This document shows positions 6,465-19,910 of a stretch of 64,000 nt of DNA, piece by piece (the stretch's first letter is position 1; the number at the start of each line of letters is the position of its first letter). The stretch covers positions 16,864,001-16,928,000 of the forward strand of contig JBHGNT010000010.1 in the NCBI GenBank assembly GCA_043228905.1, read 5' to 3'. The position numbers and the translations under genes are program-made. Below the pieces are notes generated by a model. That model did no database searches and was not told the DNA's origin. It worked only from the letters and a program-made list of their open reading frames with translations. Origin of the DNA: Azolla caroliniana. Lineage: Eukaryota > Plantae > Polypodiophyta.

Positions 6465-8098
6465 ATTACTCAACATCTATCCCTAGAGATGGTGAAGTCG
6501 AGCTTGTTAAACGAGGAAGCTCGCCGGAAGGACAAAGAGTCCATTTCCGACCCAAAGGCCTTAGTCACAGAAGGTGACATAAACCGAGGGAGAGGCTGGA
6601 ATAGAAGTCCCCAGAATCGGGACAAGTCCAGACCGAGGTCAAAGTCGAAGGGAAGGCCCACGTGCTTCTAATGTGGGAAGCAAGGACACTTCTAGAAGAA
6701 CTATTGACATTGTCAAAAGGACAAAGGGGGAGATGATGGTGTTGAACCGAAGAAGATTCTAGACATCAAGGACACCTCAGCCATCGTCGCGACTCAAGAA
6801 GAGCTTCTGTTCATTAGTGAACAGAACAATGTAAATCTCTTTGGCGAAGAATCGACATGGGTGATCGATTCCGGTGTGTCGTTTCACCTGACCCCCAATA
6901 GAGAATGTTTCTCATCGTATACGTGCGGTGACTATGGCTACGTGAAGATGGGAAATGATGGTGCATGCAAGATCGTCGGAATTGGGAATGTATGGTTGTT
7001 GATCTCGATAGGCTGCAGAATGATGTTGAAGGATATGCGCCATGTTCCGAATATCACATTAAATCTTATATCGGCTGAACAGCTCGATGGTGAAGGTTAT
7101 AGTGGTAACTTCTGAAGCGGCACACACTAGAAATTTTGCAAAGGGAACATGATCGTGACTCGGGCTAAGAAGCCAAATATATTATACATGATGCATGCGC
7201 GGCTGATCCGAAACAAGGTAAACGTAACAACTGAAACAACTGAAGATTTGTGGCATAAGAGGTTGTGCCACATGAGTTAGAAGGGAATACAAATGCTAGC
7301 CGAAAAAGAACTCTTGCCAAACTAGGTGAAGAATGTGCATCTAGATAAATGTGTCGACTGCCTGGTCGAAAAACAAAACAGGGTTGCCTTTCGCCCTAGG
7401 CCTCCAATGAGGACGAAGAATGCACTAGAACTTGTGCATACGGATGTGTGCTAGTTGATGCAAAGTCACATACCGATGCATAATACTTTGTGACTTTCAT
7501 TGATGACTATAGCCGGAAGTTGTGGGTTTCCACATTGAAGACAAAGGACTAGGTGTTGTCCGTCTTCAAAGAGTTCCAAGCGAGGGCCGAAAGGGAATCC
7601 ATACAGAAGCTAAAAGTGGTCCAGACCGATAATGGAGGCGAATACAGAGGGCAATTCAAAGAGTATTGCAAATCATTGAATGGGCTCAGTGCCAAAGACA
7701 CTGGAATTGAACGGGCTAGCTGAAAGAATGAACTGGACTATTATGAAAAGAGTCGGAAGTATGCTGGCACATGCAAAGTTGTCGAAGATATATTGGGCCG
7801 AGGCGTTGATGACAATCGTTTACATGTAAGACGTATACGAATGGTACCAAACAGTGTCTAGGTCTCCCTCGGTACTACTAGACGGTGACATACCATAAAG
7901 GGTGTGGTTCGACAAGGAAGTGTCATACTGGCATCTGAGGGTGTTCGATTGCCTGGCCTATGTGCATATAGCTAAGGACCAGAGGGGGAAATTTGATCCC
8001 AAGAGCCGACTATGTCTATTTCTTGGCTACGACGAAGACGAATTCGGGTATCACCTATGAGACCAAATCGACAAGAAGGTGATTAGGAGTCGAGATAT
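6465..8098 (+). pseudogene. copia gag C-terminal half, protease and integrase pseudogene
   Basis: ORF fragments 6384-6671 and 6861-7115 plus further decayed motifs. The gypsy insertion splits the motif KKVIRSRDI|IFMEEK. Confidence 0.9.
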
Positions 8099-8518
8099 TG
8101 TTACCGGCCGGCAAGGAGTCCAAAATACGGAGTGAAGGAATTAATTAGATATGGTTGTAAATGAGCATAGTGTGGACGGACGGACTGGAAACGGTATGCC
8201 GTTCCAGATCCGGACGGATCCCGAATAGGTGCGAGAAGCACCGTTTTGTACTACGGGTCGGAAACCTATTTAAAAGGCCGGACCCTGTTGTAATGACAGC
8301 GGATAATTAATAGAGATTATGATGTTTATACTTCTGTCTTGATTTCCGTTCTGTAATCACTGTTATATCTTACGCGTGTAATTAACCGAAGCAATCTAAT
8401 CGTGTAACTTACGTAAGTCGGTGTAATCGTTGAATCTTAATCCTATGCCATAATCACCCTTTGGTGAAGTGTCTCCGTGACACCTTGTGTTAGGCCTTGT
8501 CCGGCTAAGCGAATAACA
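8099..8518 (+). repeat. 5' LTR of the gypsy element (420 bp)
   Basis: Matches 17494-17913 except G8229/A17624 and A8450/G17845. TATA-like CTATTTAAAA near 8266. Confidence 0.97.
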
Positions 8519-8524
8519 CAGTTT

Positions 8525-8537
8525 TGGCGACCACGAT
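8525..8537 (+). promoter_or_regulatory. Primer-binding site TGGCGACCACGAT, probably for a tRNA-Arg (UCG or CCG isoacceptor)
   Basis: Begins with TGG 6 nt after the 5' LTR. It is complementary to a tRNA ending ...GTGGTCGCCA; tRNA identity is from recall. Confidence 0.7.
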
Positions 8538-8569
8538 TCCTGCTTTCTCGCAGCGAACGACGGTAATGG

Positions 8570-11500
8570 ATGACTAGACCAACGCACGACTTGGTCACAG
8601 ACCGAGCTCGACGCATCGCCGAACGGCAAAGACGGCGTGAGACTTTCCAGCAAGCAGCGCAGGAAATTCGCTCGGATCGTTCGTTCTCCAACGAGATCCG
8701 GAGAGTCGCGGAGGAATCTCTCCGGTTACGGCAAACTCGCGACCAGGACGACGGAAGCAGTCTAAGTAGTCTCCGGGAAACCGAACGACTCCTGGAGGCG
8801 CTGGCAAGCGGAGAAAACGAGGCAGAAGCCTTTTCAGCCTACGAATCAGATTCCGAAGGGGGATACAGCGTGCACACGAACTACCGGAGCAGCAACGATA
8901 CCCCCGGCGGCCCGGAAGACGACGGATCGGATACCGTGCCGACTCCAGAACCGGAACCGCTCAACCAGGGCTATCCGGAACCGCAAACGGAAGCCGTCAA
9001 GCCACCAACACCAACGAAAGAGCCGGCAAAGGTACCGGAAGAAGAGCCGGAAAAAGAACCGGAAAAAGGACCGGCAAAAGAACCGGAAGTGGAACCGGAG
9101 AAAGACCCGGAAAAATATCAACAAACGCCACTAAACCGCGACTTAATACTGGACGACGACATGCCGTTCCAATACTCAAAGTACCGCGATGATCCGGATG
9201 CGGAAGCGCATGTGGATGACTTCGAGCAGACATGGGAAGCAAATCACACGTCCCAGCGAATGACACCGGAGGAAGAAGAACGCTCGAAGATAGCGGAATT
9301 CGGAGTCACGTTGGAGGGACCAGCGACACGATGGCGGCGGTCGCAGGACCCGGCGACCATCACAACATTTGCAGAATTAAAAGCAAAATTCTTGCATTTT
9401 TTCCACAAGGAGGTCGACCAGACGACAATGGTGGGCCTGTTTTATACGATCCGACAGGAGGCAGGGGAAAGCATTCCCCAATTCGTCATCCGTTTCCAAC
9501 GAATGCATAGCCAGCTTGCCCGTGCACCCCCGGAGGAGGAATTACGGACGATATTTTTAAACGCACTCCGGGAACCGTTACGCACGGTGTGTACGGTAAT
9601 CGACTTTCGAGGATGCACCATCGACCAGGTCATTGACCGGGTCAGAGAAATGGAAAAGACAAGCTCATGGCTTACGCTGGGAACACTGCAACGGGCGTTA
9701 CCCACCGAGGAAGATCTCCGGTTCCGGCAGGCAATTCAATGCACAATCTGCTTGAATGCCGGACACTCGGCAGTAGAGTGCACCATGCGCACTCAGTGTG
9801 TGATTTGTCAATCCAAGAGTCATACAACGGACCGGTGCGAGTACAACCTGTTAAATCGACAAGCACCACCCGTCCGACGGATCGAGCCAAGAAGCAGCCG
9901 AGACGAAGATGACGATCGTTGGCAAAGAGGGAACCGGTACCCACCGGCACAAGATGTCCGGTACGGAGACAGGCAAGAGAATGATGGCCGGTACGGGAAT
10001 CGGCGTGATAACTACGACCGGTATGAGCGATCGGACCGTTATCGAGAGCCCAACAGGCGACACGAGCAATACGACAGAGACCATTCCCCTGGTTACCGAA
10101 GGCACCAGGAGGACTACGGCCGATGTTACGATCCACCACGGCCGGACTACCGAAATAAACATAAGAATAATAAGAAACGTAACTTCAAGAAAGGTGGTCA
10201 CCCTAGGGACCCGGAACATGGAATCCCAAGGGGCCAACCGGCACAGAACGCACCACTCGCTACGGGACCAACTCCGGCTACCAGCAATGCTGAATCCAGC
10301 AATACCCGTAAAGAGTACTGCTACTACTGCAGGCAGGAAGGCCACTACAGTAACCAGTGCCCGGTAAAGAGCTACGAGAAACGACCAGCAGTTAATATGG
10401 TGGTTCCGGAAGTGGCGGATTTACAGCAAGTAACCACACGGTCGAAAGGCATGGCCAAAGAATGGGAAACACAAGAGGCCATACGAAAACAGGCGACGGA
10501 ATGGGTGAAGGAAGCCAATGAAAGAAACGTCGCGGACGCGGAACGGCAAAAGGCGAAGACCATAGGGAGTGCCGGCGGTAGCCACCCAGAAAACGAGACA
10601 TGGCAAGCACTACAAGAATGTCAGATCACGTTACCACTAGGAAGACTCTTGCAGCTCGTGCCGCGATTTACGGAAGGGCTAAAAACGGGCATGACAGACG
10701 GCATAGCCCCACCGGCACCAGTCCTCTTCTCGAACCCGGAGGAAGGACCGACTGTGGTGGACACTAGTAGTCCGGCGATTACAGCTATTGTCAAAGGGCA
10801 CGAACTTCCCGGCACGGTAATCGATGGAGGTTCCGGGGTGAACGTAATAAGCCTCCGTACGTGTGATGCCTTGGGAATACATGAATGGGAGCCATGCCCG
10901 TTCTGGCTACGGATGGCGGATACGAGTTCGGTACGACCGACGGGTTTAATACGGAAATTGGAAGTCACCATAGGAGGCCACACATTTCACATCTCGGCTG
11001 TAGTGCTGCAGCTACAGGCGCAAGGCGCGTACCCACTGTTGCTGGGCAGACCATGGTTGAAAACTGCACACATCAAGCAAAATTGGCGGAAAAATATGAT
11101 CACCTTCCGGCGCGGAAAAGCCAAGGTCCGGGTTCCGACACAACCACGGACGAGCAACGGTAAGGAATGCACACCGCTGTACGCGGAATGTGTGAACATG
11201 CTTGAAGGATTGGCAGACGACGAAGAAGCCCGGTACTTGGAGGAACATCCGAAGATCATACCACTCTTCGAGATTGACGTAGCTGAAGCCGTAGCCGCAT
11301 ACTTGCCGCAGCGGGACGACACCGAAGCCGAACCAGACAAAGATGCGATTCGGGAATTACGGCAAGCACAGGAAGCGTTGGAACGGGAAATGGCCGTTTC
11401 CCAACGGGTAAAAGCATCCCAGCTCGACGAAGTGAACCTAGGAAGCAAAGACGAATCAAAACCGGTACACATCGCCAAAGAAATGAAGCCGGAAGATAAA

Positions 11501-14404
11501 GCGGCGATGATCAAACTTCTCACGGAGTTTCGCGACGTCTTCGCCTGGTCATACGAAGACATGCGAGGGCTGGACCCTCAATTATATCAGCATCAGATCC
11601 ACTTAGGCAAGGACGCGAAACCAGTGGCGCAACGACGATACCGAATGAACCCCAACTACGCCGCCAAAGTAAAAGAGGAAATCGACAAACTCCTAAGAGT
11701 GGGCTTCATCCGGCCGGTAAAGAAAGCGACGTGGCTGAGCCCCATCGTCGTCGTCCCCAAGAAGAACGGTAAAATCCGTGTGTGTGTTGATTACAGGAAA
11801 CTAAATGCCGCCACAATTACGGATGCATTCCCTCTTCCGTTCACGGACGGAGTACTGGATGCCGTCGCCGGTCATGAAGTTTATAGCTTTTTAGACGGGT
11901 TCAGCGGGTACAATCAAATCCGGATGCACCCGGACGACCAGGAAAAGACAGCGTTCGTCACCGAATGGGGGGTGTTTGTGGCCGAAGTCATGATGTTCGG
12001 CCTAAAAACGGCACCAGCAACGTTCCAGCGAATCATCATGGAGATCTTCGGCGAATACATTCCTGCCTTTATGCAAGTTTTCCTGGATGATTTTGCAGTT
12101 TATAGCCGGGGAAAAGACCATTTGCAGCACCTACGGTTATGCCTTGAAAAGTGTAGGTTATACCGGCTAAGCTTAAACCCAGCAAAATGCATCTTTGGGG
12201 TTTCAAGTGGAATATTGCTGGGACACATCGTAAGTAAGGAGGGCATTGCGGTCGACCCGGACAAAGTAAACGCCATACTAGGGGCACCGGCGCCGAAAAC
12301 GGCCAAAGCACTAAGCCGATTCTTAGGACAAATCCGGTGGCACAGCCGGATGCTCCGTCACTTGGCGGACTTGGCGACACCATTACACACCGCGGTACAT
12401 CGGACACCGTTCCAATGGACGGAGACGGAGGATAAGGCATACAATGCCCTGAAGGTACTTTTGTCGCAAGCACCTGTCGTGCAGCCTCCGGATTGGAGCA
12501 AGGAATTTCACGTGTTCGTGGACGCGTCCGACATCGCTATTGGCAGCGCCTTAATGCAACTTACGGAGCCTAAATGGTACCGGCCGGTATATTACGCCAG
12601 CCGGAAGCTGTCCCAAGCGGAGAAGAACTATTCAACGACGGAACGGGAGGCCCTCGGCATGATCTACAGTGTCACAAAGTTTCGGCACTACCTATTGGGA
12701 AGGAAGTTCTCCTTTCATGTGGATCACTCGGCGCTTCTGTACTTAGTGTCCAAGGCGTCCCTGACCGGTAAGTTGGCCCGTTGGACCTTGCTATTGCAGG
12801 AGTTCGAATTCGAGATTTTCCACCGGCCCGGTATCCAGCATGCCGTAGCAGACTACCTGAGCCGGTTAGAGTCCGGAGAACCAGGCGACGGAGTAGCGGA
12901 TGAATTCCCGGACGCGGAGTTATTCCGTATCACCCCGGAAACGGCAGCGGACGACACGGTGTCATCAGAAGATAAATGGCTGACAAACATGCACCAGTTC
13001 CTAAGCACGGGCCTGCCACCGGAGGAAATGAACCGGGACGAGAGGAAACGACTGGCGGTGCAGAGCCGCAATTTCTGTCTGTTACGGGACACCCTCTACC
13101 ACAAAGGAGCAGATGGAATATGGAGACGGGCAGTCCGTAGTGACGAGAAAGAAGTAATCTTACGGGAAGCACACTGTGGGGTTGCCGGAGGACACTATGC
13201 CGGGGAAGCGACGGCGAGGAAAGTATGGCAGAGCGGCTTGTGGTGGCCCACGACGTTAAAAGACGCCGTCAAGTATGCTAAGGAATGTGACCTATGCCAA
13301 CGAATGGGCCAGCCTACGGACCAAGCACGGATGCCACACCAACCGGTACTTCCACTAGAGCCATTCCAGAAGTGGGGGTTGGATTTTGTCGGACCGTTCA
13401 AGCCACCGGCAATGAGAACGGGTAATCGTTATGTCATCGTGGCAACGGATTATTGCACTAAATGGGTGGAAGCAAAGGCCCTGAGAGACAACACCGCGTC
13501 ATCCACAGCAAAATTCCTGTACGAAAACATTTGGTGCCGATATGGATGTCCGATTGAATTAATCAGCGACCAAGGAGGCCACTTCCTCGGCCAGGTAGTG
13601 GAAAGCTTAACAAAGTTCTATGCCGTGGTTCATAAACGGAGCACACCGTACTACCCACAGGCGAACGGGTTAGCGGAGTCCACCAACAAAACGCTGCAGA
13701 ACATTCTCCGCAAAATCGTCAACGAAAACCGGACGGACTGGGATACAAAGCTCCATAGCGCGCTATGGGCGTACAGAACGGCATACAAAACGAGTATCCG
13801 GACAACGCCGTTCCGGTTAGCATTCGGCTTAGAAGCGGTCATGCCGGTTGAGTTTCAGGTACCAAGCTTACGGATCCAACTACGGGAACGGCTGAATGAA
13901 AAGAAATCGGAGGAAATGCGGCTAGCAGCACTATGCGAACTGGAGGAGCAACGGTTGGCCAGCATCCTCCACATGGAACTGGAGCAACGACGACGGAAAG
14001 CGTTCGTTGACCGTCACCGGAAAGGTAACGAAAAGATGTTCGAAATCGGAAAGCCGGTTCTAGTATTCCAAACCAGGATGGGCAAAATGCCGGGTAAACT
14101 CCGGTTCAGATGGACAGGCCCGTATTGGCTGACACGGGAATACAACGGGTCCTATCAGATAGGGACACTTGCCGGTGAAGTACTAGGCAAGTGGGTAAAC
14201 GGATTTCGACTAAAACCCTATAAAGGACCGATGCCAAAGAACCCGTTTATGCAGCTCACCGGCACTACACCAGGAACCTGTCCGGGATCGGTACGGATCG
14301 ATCCGGAAGAAAAAGACGACGGGGAACCCGTAGCAGAGACGAAGGAAGACACGGCAACCCGTAAGGAAAACGGTCAGGGTCCGAAGGGACCTACGGATGT
14401 GTAA
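8570..14404 (+). CDS. Gag-Pol polyprotein, 1944 aa
   Basis: Gag domain, three CX2CX4HX4C knuckles, protease (VIDGGSGVN), RT (LDGFSGYNQI, MMFGLKTAPATFQR, FLDD), RNase H (FVDASD, TEREAL, ADYLSR), integrase (HHCC, WGLDFVGP, SDQG, AESTNK, GPY). Confidence 0.98.
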   Translation: MTRPTHDLVTDRARRIAERQRRRETFQQAAQEIRSDRSFSNEIRRVAEESLRLRQTRDQDDGSSLSSLRETERLLEALASGENEAEAFSAYESDSEGGYSVHTNYRSSNDTPGGPEDDGSDTVPTPEPEPLNQGYPEPQTEAVKPPTPTKEPAKVPEEEPEKEPEKGPAKEPEVEPEKDPEKYQQTPLNRDLILDDDMPFQYSKYRDDPDAEAHVDDFEQTWEANHTSQRMTPEEEERSKIAEFGVTLEGPATRWRRSQDPATITTFAELKAKFLHFFHKEVDQTTMVGLFYTIRQEAGESIPQFVIRFQRMHSQLARAPPEEELRTIFLNALREPLRTVCTVIDFRGCTIDQVIDRVREMEKTSSWLTLGTLQRALPTEEDLRFRQAIQCTICLNAGHSAVECTMRTQCVICQSKSHTTDRCEYNLLNRQAPPVRRIEPRSSRDEDDDRWQRGNRYPPAQDVRYGDRQENDGRYGNRRDNYDRYERSDRYREPNRRHEQYDRDHSPGYRRHQEDYGRCYDPPRPDYRNKHKNNKKRNFKKGGHPRDPEHGIPRGQPAQNAPLATGPTPATSNAESSNTRKEYCYYCRQEGHYSNQCPVKSYEKRPAVNMVVPEVADLQQVTTRSKGMAKEWETQEAIRKQATEWVKEANERNVADAERQKAKTIGSAGGSHPENETWQALQECQITLPLGRLLQLVPRFTEGLKTGMTDGIAPPAPVLFSNPEEGPTVVDTSSPAITAIVKGHELPGTVIDGGSGVNVISLRTCDALGIHEWEPCPFWLRMADTSSVRPTGLIRKLEVTIGGHTFHISAVVLQLQAQGAYPLLLGRPWLKTAHIKQNWRKNMITFRRGKAKVRVPTQPRTSNGKECTPLYAECVNMLEGLADDEEARYLEEHPKIIPLFEIDVAEAVAAYLPQRDDTEAEPDKDAIRELRQAQEALEREMAVSQRVKASQLDEVNLGSKDESKPVHIAKEMKPEDKAAMIKLLTEFRDVFAWSYEDMRGLDPQLYQHQIHLGKDAKPVAQRRYRMNPNYAAKVKEEIDKLLRVGFIRPVKKATWLSPIVVVPKKNGKIRVCVDYRKLNAATITDAFPLPFTDGVLDAVAGHEVYSFLDGFSGYNQIRMHPDDQEKTAFVTEWGVFVAEVMMFGLKTAPATFQRIIMEIFGEYIPAFMQVFLDDFAVYSRGKDHLQHLRLCLEKCRLYRLSLNPAKCIFGVSSGILLGHIVSKEGIAVDPDKVNAILGAPAPKTAKALSRFLGQIRWHSRMLRHLADLATPLHTAVHRTPFQWTETEDKAYNALKVLLSQAPVVQPPDWSKEFHVFVDASDIAIGSALMQLTEPKWYRPVYYASRKLSQAEKNYSTTEREALGMIYSVTKFRHYLLGRKFSFHVDHSALLYLVSKASLTGKLARWTLLLQEFEFEIFHRPGIQHAVADYLSRLESGEPGDGVADEFPDAELFRITPETAADDTVSSEDKWLTNMHQFLSTGLPPEEMNRDERKRLAVQSRNFCLLRDTLYHKGADGIWRRAVRSDEKEVILREAHCGVAGGHYAGEATARKVWQSGLWWPTTLKDAVKYAKECDLCQRMGQPTDQARMPHQPVLPLEPFQKWGLDFVGPFKPPAMRTGNRYVIVATDYCTKWVEAKALRDNTASSTAKFLYENIWCRYGCPIELISDQGGHFLGQVVESLTKFYAVVHKRSTPYYPQANGLAESTNKTLQNILRKIVNENRTDWDTKLHSALWAYRTAYKTSIRTTPFRLAFGLEAVMPVEFQVPSLRIQLRERLNEKKSEEMRLAALCELEEQRLASILHMELEQRRRKAFVDRHRKGNEKMFEIGKPVLVFQTRMGKMPGKLRFRWTGPYWLTREYNGSYQIGTLAGEVLGKWVNGFRLKPYKGPMPKNPFMQLTGTTPGTCPGSVRIDPEEKDDGEPVAETKEDTATRKENGQGPKGPTDV
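9020..9115 (+). repeat. Eight imperfect 12-bp coding repeats (EPEK-like) in the Gag N-terminal extension
   Basis: Units like GAACCGGAAAAA encode EPAK-VPEE-EPEK-EPEK-GPAK-EPEV-EPEK-DPEK. Confidence 0.85.
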
Positions 14405-14425
14405 GGTCACACACCGTCATTAAAG

Positions 14426-14460
<35 letters not shown>
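14426..14460 (+). repeat. Poly(A)35 tract between pol and ORF2
   Basis: Read directly; bracketed by TCATTAAA at 14417-14424 and 14461-14468. Confidence 0.95.
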
Positions 14461-14464
<4 letters not shown>

Positions 14465-14789
14465 TAAAAATCGAGGTATGAACGGGTGTGAAAGCAAGGC
14501 GCGAAAAGGTACGTAGTGGGCATTTAAGAGCCGCCACGTACTTAATACTAAATCGGTACACGACGTGCGCACGCTCGAAAAAAAAGGCGCCAAGACGCAC
14601 AGAGAAAAAGAGGAGCGCATGGAGACCTTCTTTTTTCGCGAGCCAAGAAGCACAGAAGCACCAAGGCAGTGGAAGCTGAGCAAACGCGAACCTGCACGCA
14701 GAGAACCCCCGCGCTCAGAACGCTCTCTCTCTCGCTCTCACCCTCATCACCACTCTACCTCGCCATCTTCCCTCGACCTTGAAGCAGAC

Positions 14790-17441
14790 ATGGAACCACA
14801 AACGCTGTCGGAAGCGGCCAGGAAATGGTTCAGGCAAAACGGACTGGAGGGGTTCTTGGCCATCATGGAGGCACCGCCGCACAGAGAAGCCGACCGGGTC
14901 ATCAAGGAGCTCGCCACAGAGGTCATCACCGAGGAAGCGATCCGCGCGCTAACAGGCCTTCCGGAGGGAGGAATCTTTCAGATCGATAACCCAACCTCGG
15001 AGCAACTCACCCGATATTTCGGTGAGTACTCTGTTGCCGGCAAAGGCTATCGGACGCAGGGCGGCGAAGATCCGCTATTCAGGGAGATAGCTCGAGTGCT
15101 CCATGAGTACGGTCACGTGTACCCCCGACCCCCTGTCATGCCAAAAAATCGGGCAGGGATGATCATAGCCACCTATGAAGGGGTCAAGGTGGACTGGCCG
15201 GTGTTGATTGCAGACGGGTTGTGCATGGCAATCGACATGGTACGAGGGAAGGACGGCAAGGAGGGTCGGAAGCTGTGGCACGCCGTAGCTCAATGGATAA
15301 CATTGCTCGTGCCGCCGGTCGAGACCGTCCAGCCAAAGAAGCGGCCAAGAGTATCGGAAGGAAGCACCTCGAAGCCGGCGTCCAAACGACAGCAGCTGCT
15401 GGCGTCAAAGGCGACGAGAGGGAAGAAACGGGTCCAAGAACCGGAGGAGGTGTCACCGGTCCGACCCGTCAAGATAACCTTACGGAGACCAGGACAGAAG
15501 GAACCGGAACCCTTGACGGCACAGAAACATGCCGTGACACAGGAAGAGGAAACGGAGGAGCCAGAAGAGCACCTCCAACGACGGTCAAGAAGTAGGACCG
15601 CCGAGACAGGAGGGGAGCGGTCGTACCCGCGAGAGGCAGAAACGCCCCCAACTCAACCTGAGCAAACCACAAGGGAAGAACCGGAACCGGTGCATAGGGA
15701 ACCGGTCTTGGCGACTTCTATAGAAGAAGTCATGCCAACGGCGGCGGAAACGGCGGGAACCGGAACGCAACAGCCGGCGAGCACAGCCAGCACACACGGC
15801 GGCCAAGGAGTAGAACCAGAACGGCATATGCAGGCACTCAGGCCAGACAATTCCACAGGGAATGAGCCGACCCGACCAGTACAACAACAAGGCACCAGTA
15901 GCATGTGGCTACGGTGGGTAGGCGAGCAAATCGCCGGAGTGGTCGAGTATATAGAGGCGGAAGAGAGAGCGCACCAGGAACGGTTGCTCGTCACAACCGT
16001 AGATCTAGAGACGGCCCGGTCCAGAATCCGGAGCCTTGAACAAGACTTGGACAGGGTCACAAGGGAAACACAAGTCCAAGCACCGGTGACTCCGGGCAAT
16101 GTACAGAATAAAGTATCAAATCAACCTGTACATAGCAATCAGACCCCGGCAACGGAAACCGTTCCGGAGAGAAATGCGGCACAAGCCCAAGAGCTTGCGG
16201 ATTTAAAGGATGAGCTAGCTGCCCAAGAAGCGCTGAGGAGCCGCGAAAGAGAATTGAAGACGGCAGCGGAGGCAGAACTCAAAAAGACTGCTGAGAATCT
16301 ACGCCGGGCCGAGGAGAGCTTACGGAAAGGCCACCAAGCATACGACCGGCTCAAGGAGGAAAAAGAGAAAATGCTGCAAGAGAAGGACAAGCTCCGGAGG
16401 AACGCCGAAACAGAAGTAGAGCGCCTGAAAGAGGAACTCCGGCAGGTAAAGGACCGGGAGGACCGGAACCATCGCCAAATCAACGGCAAGCTCAAACAAA
16501 AAACGGAGGAATTTGAGCAATTGCACCGGGAGTATAAACGGTTGCAAACGGAGCACAAGGAACGGACGGATGAGCTCCGGCAAGCCGTCGATCGGATCGC
16601 AACCGCATTCGCCAAGGAACAAGCGGAAAACAGAAGACGGTTGGAAGAGGAGGAGAAGGTTCGGACAGAGCTCCTCAGGCAACAGCAGGCGGAAAAAGAA
16701 AGAGCGGCGGAGGTACTGCAGAGGCTGCAAACGACATATCAAGGGCAGCTGACGCGCTACAGAGAGCAGGCGGAGGATACGGCAAACCTCATCAAGCAGT
16801 TGAAGGAGGAGCGACAAGTGGTGGAAAGCAGAGCTCAAATGGGAGCAAGTCGCATCCAAGATATAATGCGGGCCTGGTTGAACCAGACCAAGAGCTTGAT
16901 TGACAACGGTTCCGTCAAATGGTGGACCAAGTGGGCCACGAACGCCGCGGAACTCCAATTGCTCCAGGCTGACGTAGAGAACCGGCGGAAGGAGGGAGAT
17001 GATTGCTATATGCTGAATTCTGAAGACTTCACCGGCATAAGAGATGAGTTGGCCGAAGACTTTCAAGCCTTGGCGGCGGACCAACTAGAGCAAGTCCGGC
17101 AACTTGTAGCTCAGCTGGATGACGACAGGCTGGAGGCGCAGATCCAGTTTGAAAGCTACGAAAGGTCCCGGATCCGGGGAGAGAAAGAACGAGAACCAGT
17201 TACGGTTAACCTCAGTGATGAGGAACCGTTACTGGAAGGAGACCGTACCGGAAGCAGTCAAACGGAGATGCCGGAGCCAGAAAAACAAACGGAGCAGCAG
17301 CAGCAAGCAGAGCAGCCGGAGCAACCTCAGTCTCAACCGCAACCACAGCAGCAGCAGCAAGCACAACCGCAACAACCACAACCGGAAGAACAAGTGGAAA
17401 TTCTTGAACAAAGTAATTTGGACAATTTGGGTGAACAATGA
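14790..17441 (+). CDS. Extra retrotransposon ORF2: PMD/plant-transposon-protein-like N-terminal domain, disordered linker and long coiled coil (883 aa from ATG 14790; frame open from 14565, alternative ATG 14619)
   Basis: Uninterrupted ORF inside the element. It has the motif ITEEAIRALTGLPEGG...VDW, basic patches (PKKRPR, RGKKR), an E/K/R/Q/L-rich heptad region and a Q/P-rich tail. The domain assignment is by resemblance only. Confidence 0.85.
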   Translation: MEPQTLSEAARKWFRQNGLEGFLAIMEAPPHREADRVIKELATEVITEEAIRALTGLPEGGIFQIDNPTSEQLTRYFGEYSVAGKGYRTQGGEDPLFREIARVLHEYGHVYPRPPVMPKNRAGMIIATYEGVKVDWPVLIADGLCMAIDMVRGKDGKEGRKLWHAVAQWITLLVPPVETVQPKKRPRVSEGSTSKPASKRQQLLASKATRGKKRVQEPEEVSPVRPVKITLRRPGQKEPEPLTAQKHAVTQEEETEEPEEHLQRRSRSRTAETGGERSYPREAETPPTQPEQTTREEPEPVHREPVLATSIEEVMPTAAETAGTGTQQPASTASTHGGQGVEPERHMQALRPDNSTGNEPTRPVQQQGTSSMWLRWVGEQIAGVVEYIEAEERAHQERLLVTTVDLETARSRIRSLEQDLDRVTRETQVQAPVTPGNVQNKVSNQPVHSNQTPATETVPERNAAQAQELADLKDELAAQEALRSRERELKTAAEAELKKTAENLRRAEESLRKGHQAYDRLKEEKEKMLQEKDKLRRNAETEVERLKEELRQVKDREDRNHRQINGKLKQKTEEFEQLHREYKRLQTEHKERTDELRQAVDRIATAFAKEQAENRRRLEEEEKVRTELLRQQQAEKERAAEVLQRLQTTYQGQLTRYREQAEDTANLIKQLKEERQVVESRAQMGASRIQDIMRAWLNQTKSLIDNGSVKWWTKWATNAAELQLLQADVENRRKEGDDCYMLNSEDFTGIRDELAEDFQALAADQLEQVRQLVAQLDDDRLEAQIQFESYERSRIRGEKEREPVTVNLSDEEPLLEGDRTGSSQTEMPEPEKQTEQQQQAEQPEQPQSQPQPQQQQQAQPQQPQPEEQVEILEQSNLDNLGEQ

Positions 17442-17453
17442 AGGGGCCGAGAA

Positions 17454-17491
17454 GGGTTCGACGTACAAGGTACTGTCCCACGGGCGTGCCA
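17454..17491 (-). promoter_or_regulatory. Inverted second primer-binding site (tRNA-Arg(UCU)-like) at the position normally held by the PPT
   Basis: The minus strand reads LTR end ...TAACA-CA-TGGCACGCCCGTGGGAC-[13 nt]-TCGAACCC. No purine tract abuts the LTR. Confidence 0.7.
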
Positions 17492-17493
17492 TG

Positions 17494-17913
17494 TGTTACC
17501 GGCCGGCAAGGAGTCCAAAATACGGAGTGAAGGAATTAATTAGATATGGTTGTAAATGAGCATAGTGTGGACGGACGGACTGGAAACGGTATGCCGTTCC
17601 AGATCCGGACGGATCCCGAATAGATGCGAGAAGCACCGTTTTGTACTACGGGTCGGAAACCTATTTAAAAGGCCGGACCCTGTTGTAATGACAGCGGATA
17701 ATTAATAGAGATTATGATGTTTATACTTCTGTCTTGATTTCCGTTCTGTAATCACTGTTATATCTTACGCGTGTAATTAACCGAAGCAATCTAATCGTGT
17801 AACTTACGTAAGTCGGTGTAATCGTTGAATCTTAATCCTATGCCGTAATCACCCTTTGGTGAAGTGTCTCCGTGACACCTTGTGTTAGGCCTTGTCCGGC
17901 TAAGCGAATAACA
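17494..17913 (+). repeat. 3' LTR of the gypsy element (420 bp)
   Basis: 418/420 identical to the 5' LTR and followed by TSD GATAT. Confidence 0.97.
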
Positions 17914-17918
17914 GATAT

Positions 17919-19910
17919 CATCTTCATGGAAGAAAAGACGATTGTTGACCAGGAGATGGAGAAGATAGGGTCAGCCTCCAAGTCGACCAAAAATAGGCCT
18001 CTAGTGGTTGAGTGTCATGCAAGACGAAATGGATTCCTTGCATGAGAACCACACGTATGAACTGGTCGAGCTACCAAAGGGAAAGAAGGCTCTTCGGAAC
18101 AAGTGGGTATACAAATTGAAGCCGAGAGAAAGTTGGAATCCACCCAGATACAAAGCCCGAATTGGTGTGAAAGGTTTTCAACAGAAGAAGGGTGTGGATT
18201 TCGACGACATATTTGCCTCGGTAGTAAAGATGACGTCAATACAGATGGTTTCTGAGCATTGCAGCCAACATGGACTTAGACATTGAACAGTTGCATGGCA
18301 GAAAAACTTTCTTGCATGGAGATCTAGAGGAAGAGATCTACATGCAACAACCGGAAGGATTTGTAGAGAAAGGTAAAGAGAACTTGGTATGTCGGTTGAA
18401 GACAAGCTTGTACGTGCTGAAGCAAGCACCGGGCCGGCAATGGTATCGAAAGTTCAAATCCTACATGGTGGATCACGGTTTCAACAAGACACAAGCTTTG
18501 TCAAAAAATATGGTGGAGGAAACTTTGTCGCCCTCTTGTTGTATGTTGATGACATGTTGATTGTCGGGGAGGACCTGAAGAAAATCAGAAGCTTGAAAAG
18601 GGCTTTAAACAAATCCTTTGCGATGAAGGATATGGGTCTGGCAAAGTAGATTTTGGGTATGCACATTGTTTGGGATCAAACAAATAAGTTGATATGGTTG
18701 TCACAAGAAAAATACGTGACGAACATACTCTAGAGATTCAACATGTAGGACGCGAAGTCGATCGGTTCAACACTACCGACAAACTGCAAGATGAATAGAG
18801 GCCAATGTTTGAAGACAAAGACGAAGAAGGTTGACATGATGAAGGTCCCCTATGCCTCAACAGTCAGAAGCTTGATATACGCAATGGTTTGCACCAAGCC
18901 GGACATCACATATGCAGTCGGAGTCATCAACCAATTCATGAGCAATCCGAGCACAAAGCATTGGTTTGTTGTGAAGTGGATACTTTGGTACCTGAGAGGC
19001 ACCTTGAGCGTGTGCCTCCGATTCGGCTCAGGCAACCCCATGTTGGAAGGCTTCAAGGATTCCGACATGTCGGCTGATGCATATATCACCCGATCAACGT
19101 CCGGATATGTGATGATGTTTGCAGGGGGGGAGCCGTTTTGTGGCAGTCGAGGCTTTAGAAGATTGTGGCTCTGTCGACCATAGACGTTGAGCTGAATACA
19201 TGGTTGTCGTTGAAGTTGGTAAGAAAGTTATATGGATGAAGGAGCTTATTAGAGAGTTAGGAATTCGGCAAGAATAATTCCGACTCTACTGCGACAACCA
19301 AAGTGCCATCCACCTTGCGAAGAATGTTGCCTACCATGGCTGTTTGATTTGTTCCATGGCTGCATCATCAAGATGTCTCCAAAACATCGTACATTTTCAG
19401 CATATGATCCCATGGAATATAAATCAATGGTAGTGGCAAAGAAGTTAAATGGCATAGAATGGTTCTGGTTGGACAATGTCCCACAGGTTCAAGCAAAGGT
19501 GAATGGAAAAGAGGTGATAAAGAGGCTTATTCGTGCTAAAGTGGATGCCTTCTCAAAGTTTATATGTGGTCTTATAGCTTGACGTAGCAATGGAATTTTC
19601 TCAAGGTTTATATGTGCTCTGCTAGCAAAGGTGTTATTGGCAACAATGTAGTTTTTTGATAATATGTATTTGTGCAAAGGAAACAGTATTATGTACTATT
19701 TGTATATTGCCTTTGGCTTTTTATTAATACCAATAGAGCATATTTTTATGGAAAAAAAAAGAATGTTGCCTACCACTCGAGGACCAAGCACATCCAGAGG
19801 AGATACCATTGGTTGCAGGACGCATAAAAGCAATTTTTTGTGATCCGGTTGGATGCAAGATATAGAAAAATCAGAGAAGTTGAACGTGTGCCGACAAAGA
19901 GTCAGACTGG
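17919..19910 (+). pseudogene. copia reverse transcriptase and RNase H pseudogene
   Basis: ORF fragments 18008-18286, 18270-18560, 18389-18649 and 18791-19183 carry copia RT/RH motifs, broken by frameshifts and stops. Confidence 0.92.
19337..19758 (+). mobile_element. 422-bp retroposed insertion (5'-truncated LINE or LINE-mobilised RNA)
   Basis: Perfect 17-bp TSD AAGAATGTTGCCTACCA (19320-19336, 19759-19775) and an A-tail. Removing it restores copia AIHLAKNVAYH|SRTKHI. Confidence 0.88.

Follow-up and report, generated by a model that had tools for sequence, protein, structure and literature searches.

In LTR elements, plus-strand DNA must begin exactly at the left edge of U3. Retroviruses and LTR retrotransposons are taken to prime this step invariably with a polypurine tract, PPT (PMC5371799, PMC6317226). 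In the review of Ty3 the plus strand is primed from the PPT, and the bipartite primer-binding site (PBS) belongs to the minus strand (PMC5371799); in a survey of plant LTR retrotransposons the PPT is standard, the primer variants listed being minus-strand only (PMC6317226). Lineage-specific replacement of the standard primer by another RNA occurs in the self-priming of Tf1/Tcn1 and the half-tRNA priming of copia and Ty5 (PMC6317226, PMC5371799); there it concerns the minus-strand primer, and replacement of the plus-strand primer is not described. In Ty3, priming involves tRNA-related sequence towards the 3′ end of its genome, as part of a bipartite 5′-3′ PBS (Gabus et al. 1998, in PMC5371799). 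The 3′ part of this PBS lies in U3, is complementary to arms of the tRNA and serves minus-strand initiation, and the PPT is retained. Use of tRNA-Arg is known from Tat/Ogre-type non-chromovirus gypsy elements (PMC6317226).

The element described here, from Azolla caroliniana, shares with canonical Ty3/gypsy elements and retroviruses (PMC5371799) TG...CA LTRs, a 5-bp duplication, the gag-RT-RNase H-integrase order and a tRNA PBS, but the place of the PPT is taken by the sense 3′ end of a tRNA, CCA included. It differs from Ty3 in that the segment is identical to the tRNA, adjoins U3 and is independent of the tRNA of the 5′ PBS; a 3′ segment complementary to the primer tRNA, as in a Ty3-type bipartite PBS, was not found, the sense being that of the tRNA itself. 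Compared with Tat/Ogre elements, it is without a second RNase H and carries its tRNA-Arg(UCU) sequence in sense, at the 3′ end.

The window (the whole stretch analysed, 64,000 nt of contig JBHGNT010000010.1) was submitted to direct-repeat search and alignment. It contains an intact and young Ty3/gypsy retrotransposon at 8099-17913 (Table 1), whose LTRs, of the TG...CA type, differ at 2 positions (99.5% identity). Together with the target duplication and the full gag-pol order, this bears out the first-pass annotation, which had called the insertion intact and recent. Pfam search placed Retrotrans_gag at 246-335 of ORF1, zf-CCHC at 583, RVT_1 at 1062-1220, RT_RNaseH at 1308-1412, Integrase_H2C2 at 1524-1579 and rve at 1597-1696. 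The same search gave no chromodomain match in ORF1 or ORF2 and, as regards a second archaeal-type RNase H, no RNase_H or RVT_3 match at E ≤ 0.01; the RNase H families found were the RT-linked ones only. Homologues of ORF2 were confined to plant-associated metagenome contigs. The TGA that ends ORF2 (17439-17441) runs into the beginning of the stretch leading to the 3′ LTR. The 3′ end of ORF2 codes for a long glutamine/proline-rich tail (CAG/CCA/CAA repeats, 17300-17400), and in the relative L130 the region matching ORF2 is an in-frame fusion to Pol (2764 aa).

All long ORFs, their domains and a TATA-like box lie on the + strand of the element. Since ORF1 and ORF2 are both on this strand, the coding strand carries the 3′ site in the same sense as the tRNA. 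The first-pass annotation had also allowed for the copying of an antisense transcript, which would make the element symmetric, with reverse transcription from the inverted PBS as well. The mirror geometry of the two ends is the one observation in favour of this idea, but the coding capacity is entirely on the + strand, an antisense RNA would be without the terminal R repeats needed for strand transfer, and a PPT is missing for that direction too. Copying of an antisense transcript thus found no support, and we give it practically no credit.

Table 1. Features of the element in the window, followed by the sequence preceding the 3′ LTR in its relatives
Feature	Position	Strand	Remark
Target-site duplication GATAT, left copy	8094..8098	.	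same 5 nt after 3′ LTR
5′ LTR, 420 bp, TGTTAC...AATAACA	8099..8518	+	418/420 identical to 3′ LTR
Spacer CAGTTT, 5′ LTR to PBS	8519..8524	+	CAGTTTT in L004, CAGAAGAATTT in L008
5′ PBS TGGCGACCACGA(TTCC)	8525..8540	+	identical in L004
ORF1, 1944 aa: gag, zinc knuckle, RT, RNase H, integrase	8570..14404	+	ORF call and Pfam
ORF2, 958 aa, without Pfam family	14565..17441	+	homologues P0001-P0006, 50-93% identity
AGGGGCCGAGAA	17442..17453	+	
GGGTTCGA, tRNA-Arg(UCU) positions 51-58 (T-stem 5′ side and T-loop to A58)	17454..17461	+	
13-nt insert CGTACAAGGTACT, hairpin GTAC-AAG-GTAC	17462..17474 (stem 17463-17466 / 17470-17473)	+	
GTCCCACGGGCGTGCCA, final 18 nt of tRNA-Arg(UCU) in sense, minus one C, with CCA	17475..17491	+	17/18 match
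2-nt spacer TG	17492..17493	+	TG, AG or G across relatives
3′ LTR, 420 bp, TGTTAC...	17494..17913	+	
Target-site duplication GATAT, right copy	17914..17918	.	
Site of L001 (ORF2 93%)			identical to window
Site of L004 (ORF2 57%, LTR strongly diverged)			GTGGGATTCGA-CGTACAAGGTACT-GTCCCACGGGCGTGCCA-TG, then TGTTGACC
Site of L008 (Pol 80%)			GTGGGTTCG-CTGGACAAGGTCCTG-GCCCACGGACGTGCCA-AG, then TGTTACCC
Site of L007 (Pol 64%)			GGGTTACCA-CATTTGTC-TC-GACAAATG-CTCCACCAGGTGTGCCA-AG, then TGTTGG
Site of L130 (Pol 60%)			ATCAAGGGATTGTGGATTTCGAGTC-AGATTTT-GGA-AAAATCT-TGCCACCGGGTGTGCCA-G, then TGTTAC
Sites of L033, L034			two further variants, same layout

The bases at 17475-17493 are as the first-pass annotation had read them, and its statement that a PPT is missing at the 3′ LTR holds: the last 20 nt before the LTR comprise 9 purines, with a longest run of 3. 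Across 17454-17491 the window site matches 25 of the 26 positions 51-76 of mature tRNA-Arg(UCU), CCA included; positions 51-58 are exact and positions 59-76 match at 17 of 18, one C being deleted. The annotation had named this tRNA and had made its reading depend on a tRNA match of at least 12 nt; against the tRNA-Arg(TCT) of contig L034 (see below) the match proved to be the 17/18 that it had given. The 17-mer at 17475-17491 occurs once in the window, for a chance expectation of 0.04 at ≤3 mismatches. The 13-nt hairpin insert splits the tRNA copy exactly between A58 and G59. This point lies 18 nt from the CCA end, where reverse transcriptase (RT) copying a primer tRNA usually stops. Read as minus-strand DNA, the site is CA-TGGCACGCCC..., the usual geometry of a PBS. 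The standard 2-nt spacer that had been claimed is present here; at the 5′ PBS the spacer is 6 nt. With this C missing, as in most elements, a tRNA primer would have only 10 contiguous base pairs at its 3′ end.

An Rfam scan of 17300-17600 at E ≤ 10 gave no match, because the tRNA model misses a split fragment, and ARAGORN found no tRNA gene in the 64-kb window. The RNA of the site can be folded as an extended T-arm-like hairpin with a free tail, with unremarkable z-scores (-2.0 to +1.4); the evidence for the hairpin presented below is based on covariation, and folding energy is not its basis. The purine run at 17440-17456 was considered as a displaced PPT and rejected: it is 37 nt from the LTR, outside the repeat and absent in relatives.

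The reference tRNA was obtained by scanning metagenome contigs with GTCCCAC(N)GGGCGTG. Most of the 120 matches to this 14-15-mer were due to chance, in GC-rich bacterial genes, and those followed by CCA were alone informative. L034, from the same plant-associated ENA assembly series as several relatives of the window element, carries a complete 76-nt tRNA-Arg(TCT) with encoded CCA at 1190-1265 (ARAGORN; noted together with L034 minus strand 700-760), the 3′ part of which is GTGGGTTCGAGTCCCACCGGGCGTGCCA. The reference used throughout is a retro-copied tRNA in a related contig and not a gene of the host genome. It is placed in antisense within the leader of a short and possibly non-autonomous derived element, some 430 nt upstream of the sense 3′ site in that element. 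To all appearance RT copied an entire primer tRNA here, so that the sequence reports that of the mature tRNA. The same scan yielded two additional elements with the sense site, L033 and L034 itself, while the conventional 18-nt PBS TGGCACGCCC(A/G)GTGGGAC was present in many other metagenome retroelements, its orientation being checked against ORFs in L080 and judged by flanking sequence in the others. A junction-pattern search of viral contigs was discarded, all 120 matches being chance ones in phage-like repeats.

The comparison set was built from searches with ORF2 and Pol, using the contigs behind the matches, to which the metagenome scan added L033 and L034. Eight elements, with seven distinct site sequences, were compared: the window element, L001, L004, L008, L007, L033, L034 and L130. 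L002, L003, L005 and L006 were left out, as their ORF2 homologues end short of the 3′ junction. CCA followed by 1-2 nt and TGTT was found in 8/8 elements, as was a T-stem remnant (G/T-GGG ... CCAC) enclosing a hairpin. The window element and six distinct relatives, down to 60% Pol identity, have the same layout: T-arm remnant, hairpin, approximately GG-N-N-GTGCCA, 1-2 nt and TGTT. Relatives have this site and not the normal PPT which, as the first-pass annotation had pointed out, would have made the window element a one-off. The seven distinct site sequences have, in the last 20 nt ahead of the LTR, a longest purine run of 3. Upstream sequences, LTRs and the 5′ PBS are not conserved among the relatives.

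Only in the window element do two LTRs and the target duplication together prove where the LTR starts; L007 has both LTRs, the 5′ one cut by the contig end, and in the other relatives the start was deduced from TGTT and similarity. L004, L008 and L080 are circularly permuted or collapsed assemblies, with 3′ end, LTR and 5′ leader contiguous, an effect of assembly and not a sign of circles or tandems; the contig ends of L008 and L080 are identical. Downstream of the element in L007, at 13200-16040, is an array of ~109-nt and ~235-nt repeats with GGATTGAACCC-type motifs (T-arm complements), which may be tRNA-derived SINE-like units.

Within this common layout, conservation is uneven. GTCCCACGGGCGTGCCA is identical in L001, L004, L033 and L034 and present as variants in L008, L007 and L130, which have tRNA mismatches beyond the missing C when compared with the L034 tRNA (the tRNAs of their own hosts may differ); L007 and L130 share the variant GGTGTGCCA, at position 70 of tRNA-Arg(UCU). 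L004 and L008 keep the full T-stem GTGGG, and the T-loop part is decayed in L033, L034 and L007. In L130 about 40 tRNA positions (38-76 approximately) are kept, some of them (about 38-62) lost in the window element, and the hairpin is inserted a few nt further into the T stem. Five hairpin stems, GTAC/GTAC, GGAC/GTCC, GTGT/ACAC, CATTTGTC/GACAAATG and AGATTTT/AAAATCT, differ in sequence and length, yet all are perfectly Watson-Crick paired with zero G-U pairs; their differences are compensatory changes.

A tRNA copy at this place could in principle be a functionless relic of an old aberrant reverse transcription or recombination event that copied a primer tRNA, and the full 76-nt tRNA complement in the leader of L034 indicates that whole primer tRNAs can be copied by RT in this lineage. 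Such a relic is nevertheless difficult to reconcile with the 41-nt site of L004, which differs from that of the window by a single inserted A despite 57% ORF2 identity and diverged LTRs, with the compensatory changes in the hairpins, or with an LTR spacing that is fixed, and a PPT that is absent, in every member. We regard it as very improbable. The site looks to be under selection, the PPT having apparently been replaced.

Neither of two outgroups at 49-51% Pol identity has the tRNA-end site. In L009 (Pol 51%) the PBS is of tRNA-Asp type, and the purine stretch is only a weak one. An element of Riccia sorocarpa (Pol 49%, L252:20930-20960) has a normal PPT, AAAAAGGGGA, with a purine run of 10, four bases 5′ of an LTR that starts TGTTACC as in the window; it would be a useful outgroup for dating the replacement of the PPT. 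The closest named Pol relatives are liverwort elements (46-49% identity).

It is quite probable, in our estimation, that the 3′ site is a plus-strand priming site, whichever RNA is the primer. We read it so because purines are missing at the edge of U3 where an apparently selected, CCA-ending tRNA sequence lies 1-2 nt away, because sister lineages without the site have a PPT or a purine stretch, and because conservation is deep, the hairpins covary and the distance to the LTR is fixed.

The 5′ end was compared in the same elements. The 5′ PBS of the window element begins 6 nt after the LTR, reading TGGCGACCACGATTCC after the spacer CAGTTT, and its 12 nt TGGCGACCACGA (8525-8536) are the complement of ...TCGTGGTCGCCA, with which tRNA-Arg(UCG) ends, the tRNA compared being the human one. 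A normal PBS after the 5′ LTR, as the first-pass annotation had it, is borne out in part: it matches the end of this tRNA and is conserved in L004, and the spacer is longer than the standard one. The collapsed contig of L004 also shows, after its LTR, a 5′ PBS equal to that of the window. Four different 5′ PBS sequences are associated with one kind of 3′ site: TGGCGACCACGA in the window element and L004, TGGCACGCCCGG in L008, TGGCGACTCCGCTGGGG in L007 and TGGCGATCCTGC in L130 (window 8519-8540, L004:3854-3876, L008:1365-1391, L007 about 1566-1590, L130:97-125). There are at least 4 tRNA-type PBS sequences among elements sharing 60-80% Pol identity. The LTR-PBS spacer is long in some elements (6, 7 and 11 nt, each beginning with CAG) and 2-3 nt in L007 and L130. 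After the PBS of the window element, 8541-8569 contains a weak hairpin (TGC...GCA) and then CGAAC, possibly a T-loop complement, in a layout that would mirror the 3′ site; in L008 the hairpin is more distinct, with 5 bp, and TCGAA follows it.

These data bear on other roles that a tRNA-like segment might play: bridging of the genome ends through the primer tRNA in a Ty3-like manner, packaging or dimerisation, or mimicry of a tRNA or of a 3′ fragment, some other signal then starting the plus strand. Ty3 does bind its primer tRNA with sequences near its 3′ end (PMC5371799), the T-arm-like fold with its free tail would suit such a role, and the 5′ PBS of L008 and L034 is the complement of the 3′ end of tRNA-Arg(UCU), which would let the two ends of the RNA pair (10/12). 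However, the window element, L004, L007 and L130 have PBS of other tRNAs, and the complementarity between own PBS and own 3′ tail, 10/12 in L008, is 6-7/12 in the others (7/12 in the window element), four of the five being not complementary. Pairing from end to end was thus not found in the window element. Moreover, the 3′ sequences of Ty3 are complementary to the tRNA where these are identical to it, no alternative plus-strand primer adjoins U3, and the fold z-scores are unremarkable for the segment including its tail GGGCGTGCCA. The 5′ PBS varies without regard to the 3′ site, which makes bridging or packaging unlikely, and a role other than priming is, taken together, improbable.

If the site primes the plus strand, the primer can be a tRNA or the RNA of the element itself. 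The first possibility, that the PPT has been replaced by a second PBS used on minus-strand DNA, with host tRNA-Arg(UCU) or its 18-nt 3′ fragment as primer, is one that we put forward tentatively, at slightly short of an even chance. Minus-strand DNA would be made and its template removed by RNase H, exposing the complement 5′-CA-TGGCACGCCC... beside the small hairpin. The tRNA or its 18-nt fragment would anneal through the acceptor 3′ strand and CCA; as a primer it would read ...CCCACCGGGCGUGCCA, with an extra C relative to the element. RT would extend it through TG and U3-R-U5 to give plus-strand strong-stop DNA, RNase H would strip this primer off in the way that it removes the tRNA primer of the minus strand, and the extra 2 nt would be trimmed by integrase. 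The window element would then start its minus strand on a tRNA of Arg(UCG) type and its plus strand on a second one, Arg(UCU). The fixed distance from CCA to U3 mirrors the placement of the PBS beside U5. Each lineage is nearer to the tRNA than lineages are to one another, which would be expected of a site that pairs with the tRNA; this closeness, the long tRNA stretch of L130 and the fact that the enzyme already extends and removes tRNA primers favour a tRNA primer.

The second possibility is that a tRNA-like piece of the genomic RNA itself (...GGGCGUGCCA, possibly with UG) is left by RNase H and extended by RT. The site would then be a substitute PPT exploiting the tolerance of RT for tRNA-end/DNA hybrids, and the hairpin would position the cut. 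The evidence from position, conservation and absence of a PPT applies equally. The fragment would have the same sequence as the tRNA end and be already annealed, making a second tRNA unneeded; the conserved one-base deletion and the mismatches would carry no cost, and the adjoining covarying hairpin could set the RNase H cut by distance. The missing C, the mismatches of L008, L007 and L130 and the decay of the T-loop part favour this primer, and the decay in L033, L034 and L007 means that extended pairing with the tRNA is dispensable. Set against this, closeness to the tRNA without drift would be left unexplained (about 40 tRNA positions in L130), and a precise cut in a non-purine hybrid would be required, a precedent for which was not found in the literature searched. 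We rate priming by the element's own RNA as less probable than priming by the tRNA, though not by much. Of the claim of the first-pass annotation that a second host tRNA primes the plus strand, the priming site is supported; as to the tRNA, the tRNA-like RNA of the element would give the same DNA.

The site has a further parallel. Tags ending in CCA at the 3′ end of the genome, as in the Mauriceville retroplasmid and in plant RNA viruses, are tRNA-like and mark the start for the polymerase. Such genomic tags sit at the very 3′ end of an RNA and start the complementary strand on RNA, whereas the site described here is internal and would act on DNA. Full-text literature searches, in which journal coverage is incomplete and an older description possible, did not retrieve a tRNA-like or inverted PBS replacing the PPT. 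Literature matches to the site sequence strings were limited to human tRNA-Arg(UCG) and the HERV9 PBS, and the PBS strings had no match in the supplements of PMC6317226. The tRNA-end site, by the comparison of family members, is family-wide and selected, and its occurrence in place of the PPT is probably new.

The abundance of the family was estimated by aligning assembled contigs of three plant organisms to 14400-18000. Summed contig depth over the element is very high in all three. In each, the bin holding the site and the start of the LTR (17425-17545) is 5-10 times deeper than ORF2 and stands above the rest of the LTR, and in each of two runs the match of 79-84 contigs starts at exactly 17454, the sequence preceding it being unrelated. 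From this depth peak and these starts it follows that the site and LTR start are common to many more elements than ORF2. The site, together with the first ~50 nt of the LTR, is likewise found in many more families than are the other parts of the element. On this evidence from assembled contigs and LTR identity, the family is apparently abundant and has recently been active.

Annotation pipelines of the LTRdigest type search for a PPT, and will mis-score these elements as PPT-less. It is a tentative proposition, with a little less than half of the weight on its side, that in an entire lineage of plant Ty3/gypsy retrotransposons both strands of the DNA are primed by host tRNAs or by 3′ tRNA fragments, the PPT being dispensed with. 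If true, a high-copy active lineage would show that the PPT step is replaceable, and would offer a natural system for the study of primer choice and primer removal by RT and RNase H. Such a lineage would also be of interest for the old idea of tRNA-like tags as markers of the start of replication, and 3′ tRNA fragments could aid an element, not merely inhibit it.
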